DNA from: Selaginella moellendorffii
Lineage: Eukaryota > Plantae > Lycopodiophyta
Length of the DNA stretch: 64,000 nt
Direction: 5' to 3'
Assembly: GCF_000143415.4 (NCBI RefSeq)
Contig: NW_003314278.1
Span: 2,252,408-2,316,407 of the forward strand
Both the position numbers and the translations under genes were made by a program. The notes under the pieces were generated by a model. The model saw only the letters and a list, made by a program, of their open reading frames with translations. It did not search any database and was not told the DNA's origin. Numbering within the stretch: position 1 is the first letter of the stretch; every line of letters starts with the position of its first letter. Positions 31,171-59,690 of the stretch are shown here, in pieces.

Positions 31171-31564
31171 GTACGTAGTCCGGCCATGTGCCCCATTGCG
31201 AGATTTCTTAACAAGAATTTATAGTTTCCCAGTGTTATCCGTACACAGGGCGCTGGATGGATGGAACCCTAATCTCGGAACAACGCAAAAGCAAAGTGGA
31301 AATGGCCAAGTGTCGCATTTATGCCATGGCCGTGTCGCATGTGACAGCCGTACGAAACGGCACCTCTCGGGCCTGGCCCAAAACCCAGCCCCACGGGAAC
31401 CAGTCCGTACCGGCCCCCCAATTGTACGGCGCACGCGGACATGAGGCTTGCACCGGCCGTACAAGACCCACCGACCCTCCCTGCGGTGTTCGTACAGCAT
31501 TTAAAAGGGTGCGGCCGTACAGAATACGGAAGTGGCCACGTTAGGGTTGAGCGGGAGCGTACGG
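31171..31564. promoter_or_regulatory. Cluster of SBP-binding GTAC/CCGTAC sites upstream of the SPL gene
   Basis: CCGTAC on either strand at 31239, 31348, 31405, 31424, 31457, 31515 and 31559, plus GTAC at 31171 and 31492. Confidence 0.7.
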
Positions 31565-31901
31565 ACGGGCGCTCACCACATAGAGCCTGTTTGTTTGTTT
31601 TGGTATATTGGTATTTTATTCTCCCTCTCTCTCTCTCGCGCTGGTTGTGCCCTTCCTCTCTCTCTCTCTCTGTTCTTCCCAGGCTAGGGCTACCAGGAGA
31701 ATCCTTCCTCTCGCCAATTCCTTCGATCGCTGAGATTAGGGTTCTTCGCTTCTTCCTCTTTGTCCGTCTCGCCAAGAAAACCACGCCAATTTCTTCTCCC
31801 TCTCCTTTTCTCTTTTTAGGTCGCGAGCGCCTCGGCTTCCTCATGGCTTGATTGATTGGCAGATTGATTGATCCCGCGGCGCGCGCGCGCTCCACAGCAG
31901 G

Positions 31902-34106
31902 ATGATGGGTCAGCAGCCGCAGCAAATGGTGGGGATTCACCACCATCACCACCTCCACCACCACGAATCCGAGCAGCAGCCGATTGTCGTGGACCAGCAG
32001 CACAAGCAGCACCACCACCATCACCACCAACACCACCACCACCACCAGCAGCTCATGGAGGAGGAATCCGGCCAGGCAGGAGGAGGAGGAGGAGGAGAGG
32101 GCCTCCCGGAAGACGAGGAAGACGTGGAGGAGGACCCCGAGGACGACGATCCCGCCGAGCTCGCCGCGGCAGTGCCATCCTCGGGCGCCATCGGCGAGGG
32201 GATGGCTCCCGGCAATGCCGACGCCGCCAGTCTTGTCCCGGTTCTGGGAGTGGATTCCTCGCGGAGGCAGCACCAGCGACCAAGAGGAGGAGGAGGTAGC
32301 GGTGGTGGTGGTGGAGGAGGAGGAATCTCGAGTTCTTCGTCGGGGTCTGGCGGAGCTGCTACAGCGGTGGTGGTGGCCGCCGCCGCCGCCGCGGCGGGGC
32401 TCGTTCTTCCAGTTCCTTGCTGCCGAGTGGATGGTTGTGGCGAGGATCTGTCCACTGCCGGGGATTACCACCGGCGGCACAAGGTTTGCAAGCTGCATGC
32501 TACGTTGCCCAAGGTCATGAATCACGGCCAGGAGCAAAGATTCTGCCAACAATGCAGCAGGTTGGATCTCTCCTCCATATTTTCTCTCTCTTGCGTTTCA
32601 TTTCTTCGTTGTTCTTCTTTCCAATCTTTGATAGCGAGAGTGGAATGATTTTTTTTGGCGTGTGTTTCTTTGCATGCTTCTGCTTGCTTGATCCAGTGAT
32701 CACTGACAGAAAGATTTTTCTCTCGGTTGAGTTGGCTGATTTTTTTTCTGGTGGCTACTTTCAGATTTCATTCCTTGTCGGAGTTTGACGAAGGCAAGCG
32801 GAGCTGCCGGAAGCGCCTGGCGGGGCACAACGAGCGGAGGCGGAGGCACCAACCGGATTCGCTCGCCACAACTTCCAGTGAAAGTCCTCCATTAACTCAG
32901 GGTACGCTTTCTCCGCTCTCTTGCATGTTCATGAGTTCAAGTCTCTTCTCTCTCTTTTTTTTTTTTCTCTTCTGCGTGTACGGAAGTTCCTTTTTTTGTG
33001 ATCGATATAAGTTTTTGGTTCTTCCCTTTTCCTCATCTATTTTTGGTTTTCAGGCCGGGAGAGCAATAAAAAGCCGCGAGAGTGGAAAGGGCGTGGAAGG
33101 GGAGGGAGGAGAGGAAGAAGTGGGCTATCCTTCTCCGCACGGGGACCCGGAGACGACCCCAGCAGCCCCCTCGTCTTGCGAGACGAAATCCAGAGTATGT
33201 CCTCTAAGCGAAGAGCGGTGAAGTCAGGTGAAGAGTCATTCTCCATCATTTTCAATGATGCATTCCCAGAGCGTGACAGTGTCAAGGGTAAAATGAGCCT
33301 TCGAGTAGCAGACATGATGGAGAAGAGAGTTGCCGGAGAGTATAAGGAGATTGACGAGCTTGATATTGATATAGCAGACATGGAGCAAGTCAAGGAGGGG
33401 CTCGACCTGGGTGAAGGCGTCGTCATACCTCCGCTGCCGCTCAAAAGGGACGGGAAGCTGTCGGTGCTCAAAGGCTGGCCACCCCAGGAAGGCGCTGTGC
33501 TCAACCCGGACGAGATGCAAATCGAGACGAGCCTGACACCAAAAGACGAGCTTGAGAACAAGCGAGCATGGCAGAGAGGTACGCTCTTTTTTCTTCGATG
33601 TTGTTCTAAACCGCCAACTCGTTCGTTGCACAGATGACAAAGAGACGCTGCTCCACTGCTTCTGGGAGTGCTCCAAAGTCCAGCCGGTGTGGAGATGGGC
33701 CGCGAGGCAGCTGAGCAAGCTCCGGGGCAGCAAGGTGAAGCTGGAGCTCCGGCAGGCGGTGTTCGGCGGGAAGCTGGATAGCTGGGCCTCGCAGGAGAAC
33801 GTTTCGGTGTGGAAGCTCTTGCGGGGGATAATCCTCTGGCAGATATGGTTGGCGAGGAAGGGGAAGGCCTTGTCCGGGATCCAGTGGACTTCGAACAAGG
33901 TGATCCGGGCGGCGTGGGTGGACCTGATGATGTACGCCATGCAGGATTGGTTGGAAGTTTACAAGAAGAAGGAGACCGGCAAGATGGAAGACGCTCACGA
34001 GCTGCGCGGCAAGTTCGATTCCAAGTGGCTGGTGAACCAGTTTGCTGGGAAACGGGCCGAGTGGAGCATGGTTTGGAAGGATCCCGACGACGTTTTGCTC
34101 GATTGA
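31902..34106 (+). CDS. SBP-box (SPL) transcription factor, ~597 aa, last exon LINE zf-RVT-like
   Basis: SBP domain [11 protein letters not shown]...YHRRHKVC...RFCQQCSR|[26 protein letters not shown]. Exons 31902-32560, 32765-32901, 33054-33578 and 33634-34106 join in frame (1794 nt) through GT-AG introns. Confidence 0.85.
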
Positions 34107-34519
34107 CAGGGACGCTCGCTGGTGTCACTGCAAGAACAGTAATAGAGAAGCAAGAACCGATTAAAATCTCACCAGGAACTTACAGCGTCAGCAGCTTTGG
34201 CCTATTAATCTGGACGAGAAAGGACTGAAGCAGCTCCTCGTCTGCTTCGCTCTTTATAACACTTTGTACACACGACGGACAACGATTGTTATACTTACAA
34301 AAGGCTTTTAAGATGGTGGTGGTGGTGATGGAACGATCAAAGTCGACAGCTAGCTGGTAGAAAATAATCTCCTTTTCTTCTTCTTCCTTTCTTCTTTTCA
34401 TTTGATGGTCTGGTCTGAAAGAACGTTTAATCCCTTGTACGAGGGCTGTAACCATAGCCATAGTTACAGTTGAAGTGATTGATCCTAAAAATACGGCCTG
34501 GGATATAGCAAACTTTAGC

Positions 34520-35120
34520 TTCGTCCACTGGAGTTCGCTGCTTTTAGGGAACAACCAACAAGTTCACCATGGACGGAGCCGGATCAAGCAAGCGGTGGAG
34601 GACTGCTTTGATGGGTGCCGGGCGTAGTCGACTGGGCCTGCTGCTCCATGACATCCAGTGGAGTTTGAAAGCGAGTTCTTAAACCTTAGTCTCCGATAAA
34701 CCCAAGAGCGCCAGCGCCTCTTGGCAGCTCTTGTAGCTGCGAGATCATCACGTTCCTGGACACCACGCTCCAGCAGTGCGGCAAAGCGGGCGCTCTGGCC
34801 GAGGCCTGGATCCTCTACCTCGGCCTCGAGGCCGAGAAGCTCGTCGCCAACTTCCTCATCCTCATGTACGGCAAGTGCTAGAGCATCGACCACCTATTCG
34901 AGCGGATGGAACGACTACTCGTACAGCATCATGCTCCAGGCATTTGCCGAATGCGAGAAAATGCTCTTGCGCACCAGTCACCCGACGACGGTCAGGCTGA
35001 TGGAGTCGGGTCCGAGTTGGAAGGCCCGGAAGCTTGCCCATTCTACGGCCTCTTCGCGAAGCTCGCTCGCTCGCTCTTCGACGAGCGCAACGTGGACCAC
35101 CATGGTCGCGGCGTATGCCC
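34520..35120 (+). pseudogene. Deleted and decayed copy of the 5' part of the PPR at 36955
   Basis: Blocks such as ctccagcagtgcggcaa, gtcgccaacttcctcatcctcatgtacggcaagtgc and aacgactactcgtacagcatcatgctccaggcatttgccga match 37080-37400 and 37800-37890. Confidence 0.85.
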
Positions 35121-35139
35121 CATCTTCGTGTCCTACGCT

Positions 35140-35267
35140 AGGCTGCACCACAGTCATGACGTACACGCGCTCGCTCTCGGCCTCCTCCGCTCCCCCGCTC
35201 TGCTCGAACCGGCGAAGCGAGCGGCAGTGAAGCAGCATGCTGCGACAGTCTCGAGCATCATGGCTCG
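35140..35267 (-). pseudogene. Inverted fragment of AOX exon 3
   Basis: Reverse complement reads [39 protein letters not shown] and matches 39820-39995 with deletions. Confidence 0.85.
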
Positions 35268-35351
35268 AGTTTACTGTAGTGAACCTTTTTTTGTTTTCCA
35301 CTCTAGAATAACTCCTGGCTATTGGACTCAAGCACTCCAAACCCTTGGTCA

Positions 35352-35948
35352 TCACACCTGAATAACATCACGATCTGGATAGTTCACGAACAAATCGTAC
35401 TCCTCCGGCGGGATCATCCTGGTGTCGACTCCAGCCTTGAGCACCTTGAGATTGTTCTCAGCGTCGGTGCGAGCTTCCATCAGCATTCCGCGGATGGTCG
35501 GCCCGATCACGTCGCGAACCTCGTACGAAATGTTGAAATTGAAGGCGGTATCGCACACGTCCTTGCGCACCTCCTCGCCATAGTCAAGCCGCTCCCACCT
35601 GTAAAAGGTGACGCGAAACCCCCTGGACAGGAGCACGCCGAAGAGGAGGTAAGGCCCATCGTTCTTGTCCATCTCCCTGTCCAGGCACTCGTACATGTCA
35701 TAAGGGGTGCGGCCACAGAGGAAAATGACATCGCCATCCCGCTTGCCCTCGAGCTCGCCACTGCGCAGTGATCAGGAGGACTATGGAAGTTCTTCTTACC
35801 TGTAGACAATCACTCTTGATACATAGCCAGTCAGGAAGCCCACGGGATCTTTCCAGTAATCAGGAAGACCCAGTTCCTTGATCTTCCAGCTCTTGTCGCC
35901 CAGCACATTATCCGGAGTTACCAGATCCCTGAGACTCACGAACCCCAT
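35352..35948 (-). CDS. Orphan 2-exon gene (~185 aa) with a 39-nt intron
   Basis: ATG 35948 MGFVSLRDLV...RVIVY S(AG|T) GELEGK...MYECLD...DRDVIQV*. The GT-AG intron 35761-35799 removes an in-frame stop and the phases match. Confidence 0.55.
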
Positions 35949-35964
35949 CCCCAGCCCTAGAATG

Positions 35965-36310
35965 TTTCGAGCATTGCTGTTATAAGTCTAGTCTCGTGAA
36001 TTTATCAAAGAACTGATTTGGTCCCTCTCATCACAGTCGTCCTCGTCCATCGCAAGTGATAGACGCTACATTGGGATTGAGCTTGCGAGCTTTCACTCCA
36101 GCACAGGCAGCTCGCGGCATATCCTTCTGGACCTTGGCAGCGGCGAGCCAGGTCATTCAAGGGATGGCGCGGCATGGTATCGGCAAGGTCCTCGGCCTAG
36201 CATCCCGGCTCGGGTGACTCCATAGTCGGAGGTGATGGAAGACTATATGCCATCCTTGAAGATGGCGAACGCTGACCTCGTCCGGTGGCAGGACGAGATG
36301 CTCAATGGCG
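35965..36310 (-). pseudogene. Inverted, decayed copy of the 3' end and 3' flank of the PPR at 36955
   Basis: Reverse complement matches 38320-38830 (tccgactatggagt, gccgctgccaaggtcca, aagctcgcaagctcaatcc, agcgtctatcac, taacagca.tgctcga). Confidence 0.8.
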
Positions 36311-36340
36311 ATGGAGTGTTTGGAGTGTTTCCCTTGTCAG

Positions 36341-36925
36341 CTAGAGCTCCGGCAGGCTGTCTTCGGCGGGAAGCTGGATAGCTGGGCCTCTCAGGAGAAC
36401 GTTTCGGTGTGGAAGCTCTTGCGCCCTCGAGCAGATATGGTTGGCGAGGAAGGGCAAGGCCTTGTCCGGGATCCAGTGGACTTCAAACAAGGTGATTCGG
36501 GCGGCGTGGGTGGACCTGATGATGTACGCGATGCAGAACTGGCTGAAAGTTTACAAGAAGAAGGAGACCAGCAAGATGGAAGACGCTCACGAGCTGCGCG
36601 GCAAGTTCGACTCCAAGTGGCTGGTGAACCAGTTTTGACTGACAGGGTCCCGACGACGATTGACAGGGACGCTCACTCCAAGAACAGTATGAGCAGAGAA
36701 GCAGGAACTTACAGCGTCAGCAGCAATCCGGACGAGAAAGGACCGCTCTTTATAACACTTTGTACACACGACGGACAACGATTGTTATACTTACAAAAGA
36801 TGGTGGAACGATCAAAGTCGACAGCTAACTGGTAGAAAATAATCTTCTTCTTCTTCTTTTACAGCCTGGGATCTATAGCAAACATAGTTGAAGTGATTGA
36901 TCCTCCAAGATCAAAGCCTGGGAGA
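36341..36925 (+). pseudogene. Frameshifted duplicate of the SPL last exon and 3' UTR
   Basis: Near-identical to 33741-34520, with a frameshifting deletion near 36424 and a premature end. Confidence 0.9.
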
Positions 36926-36954: not shown

Positions 36955-38760
36955 ATGCGCTATAGATTACTTGCGTTCACTAGAGTTCGCTGCTTCCACC
37001 GCCACCACCGACGATCTTACAGTAGCCTCAGCCGCCGGGGACTCGTGAAAGTCGAGCCATGGCGGAAGGGAAAGACCAACAAGTTCACCATCGACGAGGA
37101 GCAGTGTAGGAGCCGGATCAGGCAGGCGGTGGAGGAGCTTTGCACCGATGGCTGCCGGGCGGACATCAACACGTACGCGTCGCTGCTCCAGCAGTGCGGC
37201 AACGCGGGCGCTCTGGCAGAAGGCAAGCGCGTCCACGCCCGGATCCTCCACCTCGGCCTCGAGGCCGACAAGCTCGTCGCCAACTTCCTCATCCTCATGT
37301 ACGGCAAGTGCAAGAGCGTCGACCTCGCCACCCAGGTGTTCGAGCGGATGCCCAGGCGGAACGACTACTCGTACAGCATCATGCTCCAGGCATTTGCCGA
37401 CTGCGGGCAAATGCGGCTGGCGCGGGAAGTCTTTGACAAGATGCCGCTCCAGGCCGATATCTCGTGGACCGCGCTCATCTCCGGCTACGCCAAGAACGGC
37501 TTCCTCGAGGAGGCCGAGGCGATCTTCCGGAAACTCCCCCGCCGCCACTTCGTCGCCTGGACCGCCCTCGTCACAGCGTATGCCCAGAACGGGCAAGCTA
37601 CAAAGGCGTTCCGGACCTTCCAACTCATGGACCTGGACGGCTCCCAGCCCGACTCCATCGCCTTCATCAGCGTCTTGGATGCCTGTGCGACCGTATTCGC
37701 GCTGGACGCGGGGAGATTGGTCCACAGGACAGTGGCGGATGCCGGAGTGAGCCTGGATGCCCGAGTTGTCAACATGCTCATCCACCTTTATGGACGCTGT
37801 GGCGCTCTTCGCGAAGCTCGATCCCTCTTCGACAAGCTGGACGAGCGCAACGTTGTCTCGTGGACCACCATGGTCGCCGCCTATGCCCAGAACGGCTACC
37901 CGGACGAGGCCCGAGCCATCTTCGATGAGATGCCTCGCCGCAACCTTGTGTCCTGGAACGCCATGGTGACGGCCTACGCCGAGAATGGCCGCGGGAAGAA
38001 GGCGCTCGACATCTTCCGGCTCATGGACCTGGAAGGCACCCAGGCTGATGGATTCACGTACTTGGGATCGCTGGATGCCTGCTCCACGATCCCAGACCTG
38101 GCCTACGGGAGACTCATCCACGCCGAGATCCGCGAGAGTCGCAGCTCCAGCGATCCCAAAGTTGGCAACGCGCTGCTCAATCTCTATGCCAAGTGCGGCC
38201 ACCTCCGGGACGCGGTGGCGCTGTTCGCAACGATGCCGATGAAGATCCTTGCGGCCTGGAACACCATGATCGGGGCCTTCGCTCAAACCGGCCACGGCAA
38301 AGAAGCCATCGAAGTCTTCGAGCATCTGGCGATGGAAGGCCTGCTACCGGACGAGATTAGCTTCATCAGTGTTCTCTCCGGCTGTGCCTACGCCGGGATC
38401 TTCAAGGACGGGCTCCGGATCTTCGTTTCCATCACGTCCGACTATGGAGTGACCCGAGTCTACGACCACTTCGTGTGCGCTGTGAACATCCTGTGCCAGG
38501 CCGGGATGCTGGAGGAGGCCGAGGAGCTTGCCGATACCATGCCGTTTGTGACCGACGCCATCCCGTGGATGACTTTGCTCGCCGCTGCCAAGGTCCAAAA
38601 CGATATGCCGCGAGCTGCCCGTGCTGGAGAGAAAGCTCGCAAGCTCAATCCTAATGTATCGGCGCCTTACGTGATGCTGTCCAGCGTCTATCACATGCGG
38701 CGCCAGCAAGCCGGCGAGAGCGAAGACGAGGACGAAGAGGTGATCCTGTCCGAAAGGTGA
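36955..38760 (+). CDS. PLS-class PPR protein (E domain, no DYW) with a putative mitochondrial presequence
   Basis: Arg/Ser-rich N-terminus, P/L/S motifs (YASLLQQCG, MYGKC, NVVSWTTMVAAYAQNG), WMTLLAAA, APYVMLSSVY. Confidence 0.93.
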   Translation: MRYRLLAFTRVRCFHRHHRRSYSSLSRRGLVKVEPWRKGKTNKFTIDEEQCRSRIRQAVEELCTDGCRADINTYASLLQQCGNAGALAEGKRVHARILHLGLEADKLVANFLILMYGKCKSVDLATQVFERMPRRNDYSYSIMLQAFADCGQMRLAREVFDKMPLQADISWTALISGYAKNGFLEEAEAIFRKLPRRHFVAWTALVTAYAQNGQATKAFRTFQLMDLDGSQPDSIAFISVLDACATVFALDAGRLVHRTVADAGVSLDARVVNMLIHLYGRCGALREARSLFDKLDERNVVSWTTMVAAYAQNGYPDEARAIFDEMPRRNLVSWNAMVTAYAENGRGKKALDIFRLMDLEGTQADGFTYLGSLDACSTIPDLAYGRLIHAEIRESRSSSDPKVGNALLNLYAKCGHLRDAVALFATMPMKILAAWNTMIGAFAQTGHGKEAIEVFEHLAMEGLLPDEISFISVLSGCAYAGIFKDGLRIFVSITSDYGVTRVYDHFVCAVNILCQAGMLEEAEELADTMPFVTDAIPWMTLLAAAKVQNDMPRAARAGEKARKLNPNVSAPYVMLSSVYHMRRQQAGESEDEDEEVILSER

Positions 38761-59381: not shown

Positions 59382-59690
59382 TTGACTGGCAATGTGTCAA
59401 AGTGAATATTGTAATTTGACTCCGCCAGCTGGCCAACCGCTAGTTAAACATTGACTAGCATTGACTAGATAACTCGGCCGCCGATAAACATTGACTAGCA
59501 TTGGCTTTGACATGGCACTAGAGCTGGCTAAACATTGACTAGCTAAACATGACGAACATTGACTAGATACTCTAGAAACTGGACCGTTGACTAAATATTG
59601 ACTAGCATTGACTACATACTGTGCCACCGTTGACTATAGCTGTTGCTAGATAGTGCTTTGACTCGGCCACCGTTGACTAGAACTGACTAA
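59382..59690. repeat. Degenerate CATTGACTAG tandem repeat (13 TTGACT W-box cores)
   Basis: TTGACT at about 59382, 59416, 59451, 59461, 59491, 59535, 59559, 59587, 59598, 59608, 59630, 59658 and 59673. Confidence 0.8.

Follow-up and report, generated by a model that had tools for sequence, protein, structure and literature searches.

Can a plant transcription factor gene carry a piece of a retrotransposon as its last exon, and does such a piece do anything for its host? This question is raised by a gene on contig NW_003314278.1 of the lycophyte Selaginella moellendorffii (RefSeq assembly GCF_000143415.4), which we analyzed within a stretch of 64,000 nucleotides (nt) of the forward strand (positions 2,252,408 to 2,316,407; hereafter the window, whose numbering is used throughout). 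A first-pass annotation, made from the sequence alone, had proposed that the gene encodes an SPL transcription factor whose fourth exon derives from the C-terminus of the ORF2 protein (ORF2p) of a long interspersed nuclear element (LINE). We find that the gene is a member of the SBP-box (SPL) transcription factor family, that it is expressed with exon 4 as one mRNA, and that exon 4 was domesticated from an L1-type LINE ORF2 protein, of which it retains the part reaching from the His of the CCHC zinc knuckle to the end (approximately residues 1136-1259 of human ORF2p).

When the four exons are rejoined through their GT..AG introns they yield an open frame of 1794 nt (597 codons and a stop) with no internal stops, in agreement with the first-pass annotation, and exon 4 encodes the peptide quoted there. 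The exons have phases 2, 1 and 1. The SBP domain (PF03110) is split over two exons, scoring 61.4 bits in exon 1 (residues 174-219, profile positions 1-46) and 37.6 bits in exon 2 (profile positions 48-74), both above the Pfam gathering score of 27 bits. Members of this family bind zinc through a Cys3His and a Cys2HisCys set, and all eight ligands are present in the translation, followed by a basic K-R-S-C-R-K-R ... R-R-R-R stretch. A complete SBP domain, the basic stretch and an SBP intron after C-S-R, the usual position in the family, are shared with the short-type SPL members; the same intron position is found at both loci examined in another lycophyte, Diphasiastrum complanatum. The tail of exon 3 carries a conserved motif, G-L-D/E-L-G-x-G ... 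P-P-L-P-x-K-R-D-G ... W-P ... K-x-W-Q. Exon 4 had been described as rich in G and C at third codon positions (GC3), and its value is indeed 0.86, as compared to 0.62-0.68 in exons 1-3. As first reported, a search of the gene (31540-34458) for miR156-complementary sites, allowing up to 3 mismatches, found none, the sole match in the window lying at 59684; the query was the canonical flowering-plant target, which a divergent lycophyte miR156/529 site could escape.

Transcript evidence was drawn from sequencing runs, 15 of which contain at least 2/3 of the sampled words from positions 31700-34400. The contigs of four of these, from four different studies, were mapped to 31400-34900, skipping the low-complexity repeats at 31935-32106, 32278-32329 and 32939-32979. 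All three introns were spliced out in the contigs of all four runs, including the 55-nt intron in front of exon 4 (joint 33578/33634), whose removal was flanked by 199-255 nt of contig on each side. Since the contigs lack the introns, and the introns are bounded by GT..AG, spliced RNA is implied. One 2537-nt contig spans 31540-34458, uninterrupted save for the introns, and the SBP domain and exon 4 therefore lie on a single transcript. An SPL mRNA that ends before exon 4, a prospect raised in the first-pass annotation, was thus not borne out.

Some variation was seen among these contigs. The alternative joint inside exon 3 (Table 1) appeared in three of the four runs, in short contigs only (30-nt side), and its use would excise a stretch that includes a K-S-G-E-E-S motif common to Diphasiastrum. 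A 9-nt in-frame insertion (three codons) within the low-complexity stretch of exon 1, following 32402, was found in the contigs of two of the four runs and is presumably an allelic length variant. In two runs, contigs also part from the window sequence ahead of 31875 and beyond 32392.

To what does exon 4 owe its sequence? A phmmer search with the open reading frame (ORF) 33552-34103, which comprises exon 4 and its in-frame upstream extension, against 1.84 billion representative proteins retrieved 164 matches at E<=1e-3. The two best (E 4e-63 and 5e-61, with 70% and 66% identity) are both hypothetical proteins of D. complanatum that carry the Pfam SBP domain, and they match the query from residue 28/29 to its end, exactly the part encoded by exon 4, at their own C-termini. 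The remaining matches that we examined appear to be LINE ORF2-type C-termini, with 23-35% identity and E-values from 1e-18 (1.5e-18) to 1e-3. In five of them (P0003, P0012, P0023, P0046 and P0074) the match starts within the last residues of zf-RVT and runs approximately 110-140 residues further; RVT_1 is also present in P0023, P0046 and P0074, and an APE-type endonuclease (Exo_endo_phos) in P0046. The zf-RVT domain was found in 28 of the 54 long matches, with no unrelated family recurring, and the SBP domain in just two of the 150 best matches, both of them Diphasiastrum representatives. The exon-4 domain is present in ORF2 proteins of algae, bryophytes, cnidarians and chordates, the named LINE-type sources including a moss, a liverwort and a green alga (Ceratodon, Riccia and Haematococcus, respectively). 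Five matches that resemble mammalian-type L1 ORF2 C-terminal fragments (P0034, P0076 and P0145-P0147) were excluded from the alignments, trees, fold and remote searches, and kept in the scan of 150 matches for SBP.

The zf-RVT pattern C-x2-C ... H-x4-C is only half retained, with the His and the last Cys kept. The upstream C-x2-C, whose absence had been pointed out before, is missing in the spliced Selaginella protein and in all three Diphasiastrum proteins in which we found the domain. Like LINE ORF2 C-termini, exon 4 has kept the invariant Trp residues of its helical core. When the profile of the exon-3 tail was compared by hhalign with a profile of the zf-RVT region (22 LINE matches), only residues encoded by exon 4 aligned, indicating that the retroelement-derived part begins at the splice junction or within a few residues of it. 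The idea that the exon-3 tail is the missing upstream part of zf-RVT was rejected on the same comparison. An extension of the LINE homology into intron 3 (ORF 33552-33635) is similarly unsupported: some phmmer alignments reach into it, with almost no identities bar one Cys. Upstream of exon 4 there is no coding for an endonuclease or a reverse transcriptase; exon 3 of the SPL gene lies there, without a Pfam family or profile similarity to upstream zf-RVT, and the locus is therefore not an autonomous LINE copy.

The first-pass annotation had seen a trace of exonisation in a Cys codon in the acceptor region. This codon is present: an in-frame TGY (Y, pyrimidine) occupies acceptor positions -7 to -5 in both Selaginella (tgcacag) and Diphasiastrum (tgtgcag), in each case eight codons before the knuckle His. 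The corresponding spacing between the second knuckle Cys and the His in LINE relatives is 8 in P0124 and P0126, and 9 in P0004, P0006 and P0012. The codon would fit an acceptor born within knuckle-coding sequence, and is suggestive only, coming as it does from two lineages and overlapping the splice consensus.

The predicted fold points in the same direction as the sequence. An AlphaFold2 model of exon 4 (54-row alignment; mean predicted local distance difference test, pLDDT, 94.1; predicted template-modelling score, pTM, 0.87) is helical with a terminal beta-hairpin. In VIA-align it superposes on residues 1136-1259 of human L1 ORF2p in four entries (Z 10.0, 9.5, 9.2 and 8.9; root-mean-square deviation 2.8-3.0 Å over 122-123 residues), with the next unrelated folds at Z<=5. 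A shape search of the ESM Atlas retrieved clusters that are mostly zf-RVT, RVT_1 and Exo_endo_phos, plus DUF1725 clusters, at template-modelling (TM) scores of 0.6-0.77. With phmmer, the families in its matches and VIA-align in accord, the LINE ORF2 origin first proposed for exon 4 stands. The exon-4 domain of the four SPL proteins has an isoelectric point of 9.3-9.7 and 13-14 Trp per 156 residues; in an AlphaFold model of the Diphasiastrum exon-3 tail together with exon 4, the tail is of low confidence (pLDDT 40-70). In human L1, the C-terminal segment (CTS) of ORF2p engages the poly(A) tract and a stem-loop of the template RNA, largely with aromatic and basic side chains, and two of the contacting residues, Trp1208 and Lys1236, fall in the range retained in exon 4 (PMC10830416). 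Sequence homologues of this segment were earlier known only inside the L1 family (PMC10830416).

How old is the fusion? Its architecture had been called novel, but it is no novelty of Selaginella: three Diphasiastrum complanatum SBP paralogues end in the exon-4 domain, with 66-70% identity and the same final residues, and the architecture is hence ancient. Along exons 2, 3 and 4 these proteins align collinearly with the window gene, exon 2 being 94% identical to P0001. Two of the Diphasiastrum loci have four coding exons as here, and a phase-1 intron interrupts them at the same codon, following W-Q-K/R. Since the fusion is common to both genera and uses the same intron, the capture predates the split between Selaginellaceae and Lycopodiaceae, a divergence of Devonian age that lies several hundred million years back. 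The simplest reading would be a single capture before this divergence, followed by strong purifying selection.

The intron itself differs in size between the genera, with 55 nt in the window and approximately 5-7 kb in Diphasiastrum (L001:14440-19461 and L002:11440-18256). The Diphasiastrum acceptor is a tandem cagaag/cagagg, giving isoforms with or without one Glu (P0001 versus P0152/P0155).

Selection on exon 4, which the first-pass annotation had presumed, is strong. Between the Diphasiastrum paralogues on chr05 and chr23, the nonsynonymous rate (dN) is 0.039 and the synonymous rate (dS) 0.525 (dN/dS 0.073); between Selaginella and Diphasiastrum synonymous sites are saturated, with a dN of 0.21, which leaves the paralogue pair as the one informative comparison. 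Among the contigs of the four runs all 6 exon-4 variants are synonymous, where approximately 21% would be expected for random changes, as are all 3 variants in exon 3. Exon 4 thus does not evolve neutrally. In a maximum-likelihood tree, midpoint-rooted for drawing only, the four SPL domains form one clade (SH-aLRT, the Shimodaira-Hasegawa-like approximate likelihood ratio test, 92) with branches of 0.01-0.2, as compared to 0.4-1.5 for the LINE branches.

The course of events that we propose begins with the 3' end of a LINE downstream of an ancestral SPL gene, which would have been exonised through an acceptor arising inside knuckle-coding sequence. This would have happened before the Selaginellaceae/Lycopodiaceae divergence, with purifying selection holding the fusion since. 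By analogy with other SPL proteins, the SBP domain would bind sequence-specifically to a GTAC core. The captured domain appears to have lost the integrity of the zinc knuckle with its two N-terminal Cys residues, and to have kept a compact, basic, Trp-rich helical fold; it would most likely act as an accessory nucleic-acid-binding module (for RNA or single-stranded DNA), or else as a partner-docking module. Taken as a whole, this explanation (a LINE-derived exon, an ancient capture and probable binding of nucleic acids or partners) seems to us probable. Supposing that the domain is functional, nucleic-acid binding would be the leading, still tentative, candidate for its role, protein interaction is nearly as likely, and something else is rather less likely. 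A more specific version, in which lycophytes have kept since before the split an SPL factor with a working nucleic-acid-binding ORF2p-CTS module, and in which this module adds a second activity on RNA or single-stranded DNA, for example on nascent or poly(A) RNA at its targets, is conceivable, if on the doubtful side. Exon 4 would then be the first case of an ORF2p C-terminal segment domesticated to serve a host, as well as a naturally minimal form of that segment to study.

Several observations weigh against the explanation that we favor. Exon 4 falls below the Pfam zf-RVT (PF13966) threshold of 27.5 bits, so that the Pfam check suggested in the first-pass annotation came out negative, and it matches no Pfam model at E<=10; the same blank result at this threshold was obtained for exon 3 and for the copy at 36441, with exon 4 searched as ORF 33552-34103. 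For exon 4 this is explained by what it retains, namely only about the last 18 zf-RVT positions and a stretch that Pfam does not model. Foldseek places human LINE-1 ORF2p first, yet at E 1.2-4, which is not significant alone, the match emerging clearly only in VIA-align, and a family profile run against all Protein Data Bank (PDB) sequences matches only L1 ORF2p, at the same place (1138-1163), with an E of just 0.38. The transcript data are assembled contigs whose RNA label is a guess, and yield neither isoform proportions nor poly(A) sites. Two lycophyte lineages were sampled, with Isoetes, ferns and bryophytes covered through the content of the protein libraries only. A word-indexed search of a collection of 5.8e9 proteins found no S. 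moellendorffii protein with the domain, and the fusion may be unannotated there; in this search exon 4 alone (candidates of 86-273 residues) had no match, and residues 334-489 of Diphasiastrum P0001 (candidates of 269-855 residues) retrieved only the three Diphasiastrum proteins, which says little on other lengths.

The remaining points against it concern function. Two of the four zinc ligands are gone, together with the N-terminal third of the human CTS, which comprises an insertion helix and the RNA contacts Lys1107, His1113 and Trp1131 (PMC10830416), and RNA binding may have been lost with them. The loss of the first knuckle Cys residues and of this third argues against a simple retention of the LINE activity; we infer the nucleic-acid or partner role from ancestry and composition.

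These losses bear directly on the best of the other explanations, in which the domain is functional as a surface for protein-protein contacts or oligomerisation, or by regulating the SBP domain from within the same molecule, and the LINE fold serves as a stable helical scaffold that does not bind nucleic acids. The broken knuckle and an aligned range that starts only at residue 1136 speak for such a role, and so do residues specific to the SPL clade that are strongly conserved (for example the C-terminal F-A-G-x-R ... W-S-M-x-W-K-D), suggesting a host-specific surface. The domain is nevertheless basic and Trp-rich in all four proteins, and no partner is known; we regard this alternative as possible but unlikely. 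It is far less probable that the domain acts as a decoy against LINEs, an ORF2p-CTS copy that competes for LINE template RNA or for ORF2p-interacting factors and ties SPL to transposon control. The parent module does grip the poly(A) and stem-loop of the LINE template, and similar LINE ORF2 C-termini are present in green algae as well as bryophytes (Haematococcus, Ceratodon, Riccia), but a decoy in an arms race is expected to change fast, whereas this domain belongs to a DNA-binding transcription factor and changed very slowly across an ancient split.

That exon 4 is functionless, the product of neutral read-through, or of a chimeric transcript, running into the decayed remnant of a LINE, may be suggested by the LINE-like ORF directly 3' of the gene, the decayed partial copy nearby and an intron of just 55 nt, but has next to no probability in view of the Diphasiastrum fusion with 66-70% identity and the identical intron phase, the dN/dS of 0.073, the 6/6 synonymous variants, a frame intact over 156 codons at a GC3 of 0.86, and the confident AlphaFold2 model. 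An equally negligible chance is given to a transfer in the opposite direction (an old host domain acquired by LINEs) or to convergence of an unrelated helical bundle, since the weak Foldseek E-values, and the ease with which helical folds reach middling Z, are outweighed by sequence homology that is significant without any structure (E down to 1e-18 among 1.84e9 proteins), by the same place in ORF2, right after zf-RVT, by SBP linkage in only two of the 150 best matches, and by the short SPL branches among long LINE ones under a root placed for drawing.

How does exon 4, read as a captured ORF2p segment, compare with known systems? With the ORF2p CTS of the L1 clade (the plant zf-RVT, PF13966, region and the mammalian DUF1725 type) it shares sequence, fold, the knuckle His and last Cys, and the core Trp residues. 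It differs in having no reverse transcriptase, no endonuclease, no first two knuckle Cys and nothing else from upstream, in scoring below the zf-RVT threshold, in being spliced to an SBP factor, and in evolving slowly under purifying selection with C-terminal residues specific to its clade. From other SPL clades the gene differs by the added LINE-derived C-terminal domain and by having no miR156 site. In a study of the SPL genes of Selaginella, four clades are named after other features and a LINE-domain fusion goes unmentioned (PMC9179412); judged by eye from the sequence, the window gene is without the RTYF, TIG and Ank2 features of the clades described there. Among the papers searched, we found none linking SBP/SPL with a zf-RVT or LINE domain, and none containing both 'zf-RVT' and 'SQUAMOSA'.

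Host-transposon fusion genes and domesticated transposon proteins include FHY3/FAR1 (from a Mutator-like transposase), DAYSLEEPER (hAT), SETMAR and L1TD1 (L1 ORF1). As in the present gene, a host gene took up a domain of a transposon protein through splicing in these cases, and selection has preserved it. Known domestications in transcription factors mostly reuse the DNA-binding domains of DNA transposases, whereas here the CTS of a non-LTR (long terminal repeat) ORF2p joined a factor that already owned a DNA-binding domain. Capture of transposon domains by host genes is thus already known; what appears to be new is a conserved ORF2p CTS on a plant transcription factor.

A possible second case lies in the same species. 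The nearest non-SPL relative of exon 4 is the C-terminal part, approximately 140 residues, of SELMODRAFT_405008 (P0015; GL377568.1, L003:8001-8792), a 263-residue single-exon hypothetical protein of S. moellendorffii of which SELMODRAFT_414848 is an allele. It is 32-35% identical to exon 4, sister to the SPL clade in the tree (SH-aLRT 92) and shares F-A-G-x-R. In contrast to exon 4, it has neither an SBP domain nor the knuckle His and Cys, its N-terminus is different, and its separate locus has ordinary host genes for neighbors. Here the same captured domain may underlie a second host gene.

The shared intron, the presence in two genera and the strong constraint indicate that the fusion arose in lycophyte SPL genes as an innovation that is both old and fixed, and is not an accident of annotation. 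The role of the L1 CTS has been clarified only by recent structures, and here this segment is found fused to a key family of developmental transcription factors in plants. The fusion defines a lineage-specific SPL clade, which bears on how the SPL networks of early vascular plants differ, and provides a compact, well-folded natural derivative of the ORF2p CTS without a zinc knuckle, useful for biochemistry. The reference annotation may miss exon 4, given that the large protein collection yielded no matching protein of Selaginella. The coordinates of the gene and of its nearby partial copy are given in Table 1.

Table 1. Features of the SPL gene and its partial duplicate in window coordinates (UTR, untranslated region; CDS, coding sequence; NLS, nuclear localization signal).
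Feature	Position	Strand	Remarks
5' UTR	31540..31901	+	Minimum extent; longest transcript contig begins at 31540, and the true start cannot be fixed from contigs
Exon 1 CDS	31902..32560	+	His/Gln/Gly-rich low-complexity N-terminus, then first 46 SBP positions; splice joint in 4/4 runs
Intron 1	32561..32764	+	204 nt, GT..AG, within SBP domain; skipped in 4/4 runs
Exon 2 CDS	32765..32901	+	Second half of SBP and basic NLS-like stretch
Intron 2	32902..33053	+	152 nt, GT..AG; joint in 4/4 runs
Exon 3 CDS	33054..33578	+	No Pfam family; collinear with Diphasiastrum orthologues
Alternative in-frame intron inside exon 3	33195..33377	+	183 nt, GT..AG, drops 61 residues; joint 33194->33378
Intron 3	33579..33633	+	55 nt, GT..AG, phase 1; joint in 4/4 runs
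Exon 4 CDS	33634..34106	+	156 full codons and stop; domesticated L1-type LINE ORF2p C-terminal segment
3' UTR	34107..34458	+	Transcript contigs stop at 34404-34458; longest reaches adapter sequence at 34458
Broken partial tandem duplicate (last two thirds of exon 4 and 3' UTR)	36339..36850	+	Outside the functional gene

The first-pass annotation had also noted a frameshifted duplicate of exon 4 at 36341. The duplicate is real and is indeed broken by deletions and frameshifts; it is not a second copy of the element, however, and represents a partial segmental duplicate of the 3' end of the gene. It begins in the middle of exon 4 (33739 corresponding to 36339), continues through the stop and the 3' UTR to approximately 34400 (approximately 36850 in the copy), and resumes in pentatricopeptide repeat (PPR) sequence, where 34804-34964 matches 37237-37414. 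The two copies are approximately 94-95% identical in coding and non-coding parts alike, the second carrying deletions of 8 and 26 nt, and others besides. Of 16 substitutions in coding blocks without gaps, 11 are synonymous when read in the frame of the first copy, as expected if that copy remained constrained. The duplicate is left over, in broken form, from a local rearrangement that involved PPR genes.

Downstream of the SPL gene, positions 34560-36340 and 36955-38760 form a mosaic of PPR sequence. A decayed fragment at 34574-34969 corresponds to N-terminal sequence of the intact PPR gene (36955-38760), and an inverted C-terminal PPR fragment at 36064-36169 is 91% complementary to 38556-38661. 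A tandem duplication of 2.5 kb took the 3' end of the SPL gene along. The window probably represents another haplotype, accession or very close species than the v1 reference model, since the protein of the intact PPR gene (36955-38757) is only 95% identical to its closest S. moellendorffii relative, SELMODRAFT_79700, and 92% identical to a second one by BLASTP (87.5% over the full length by tblastn).

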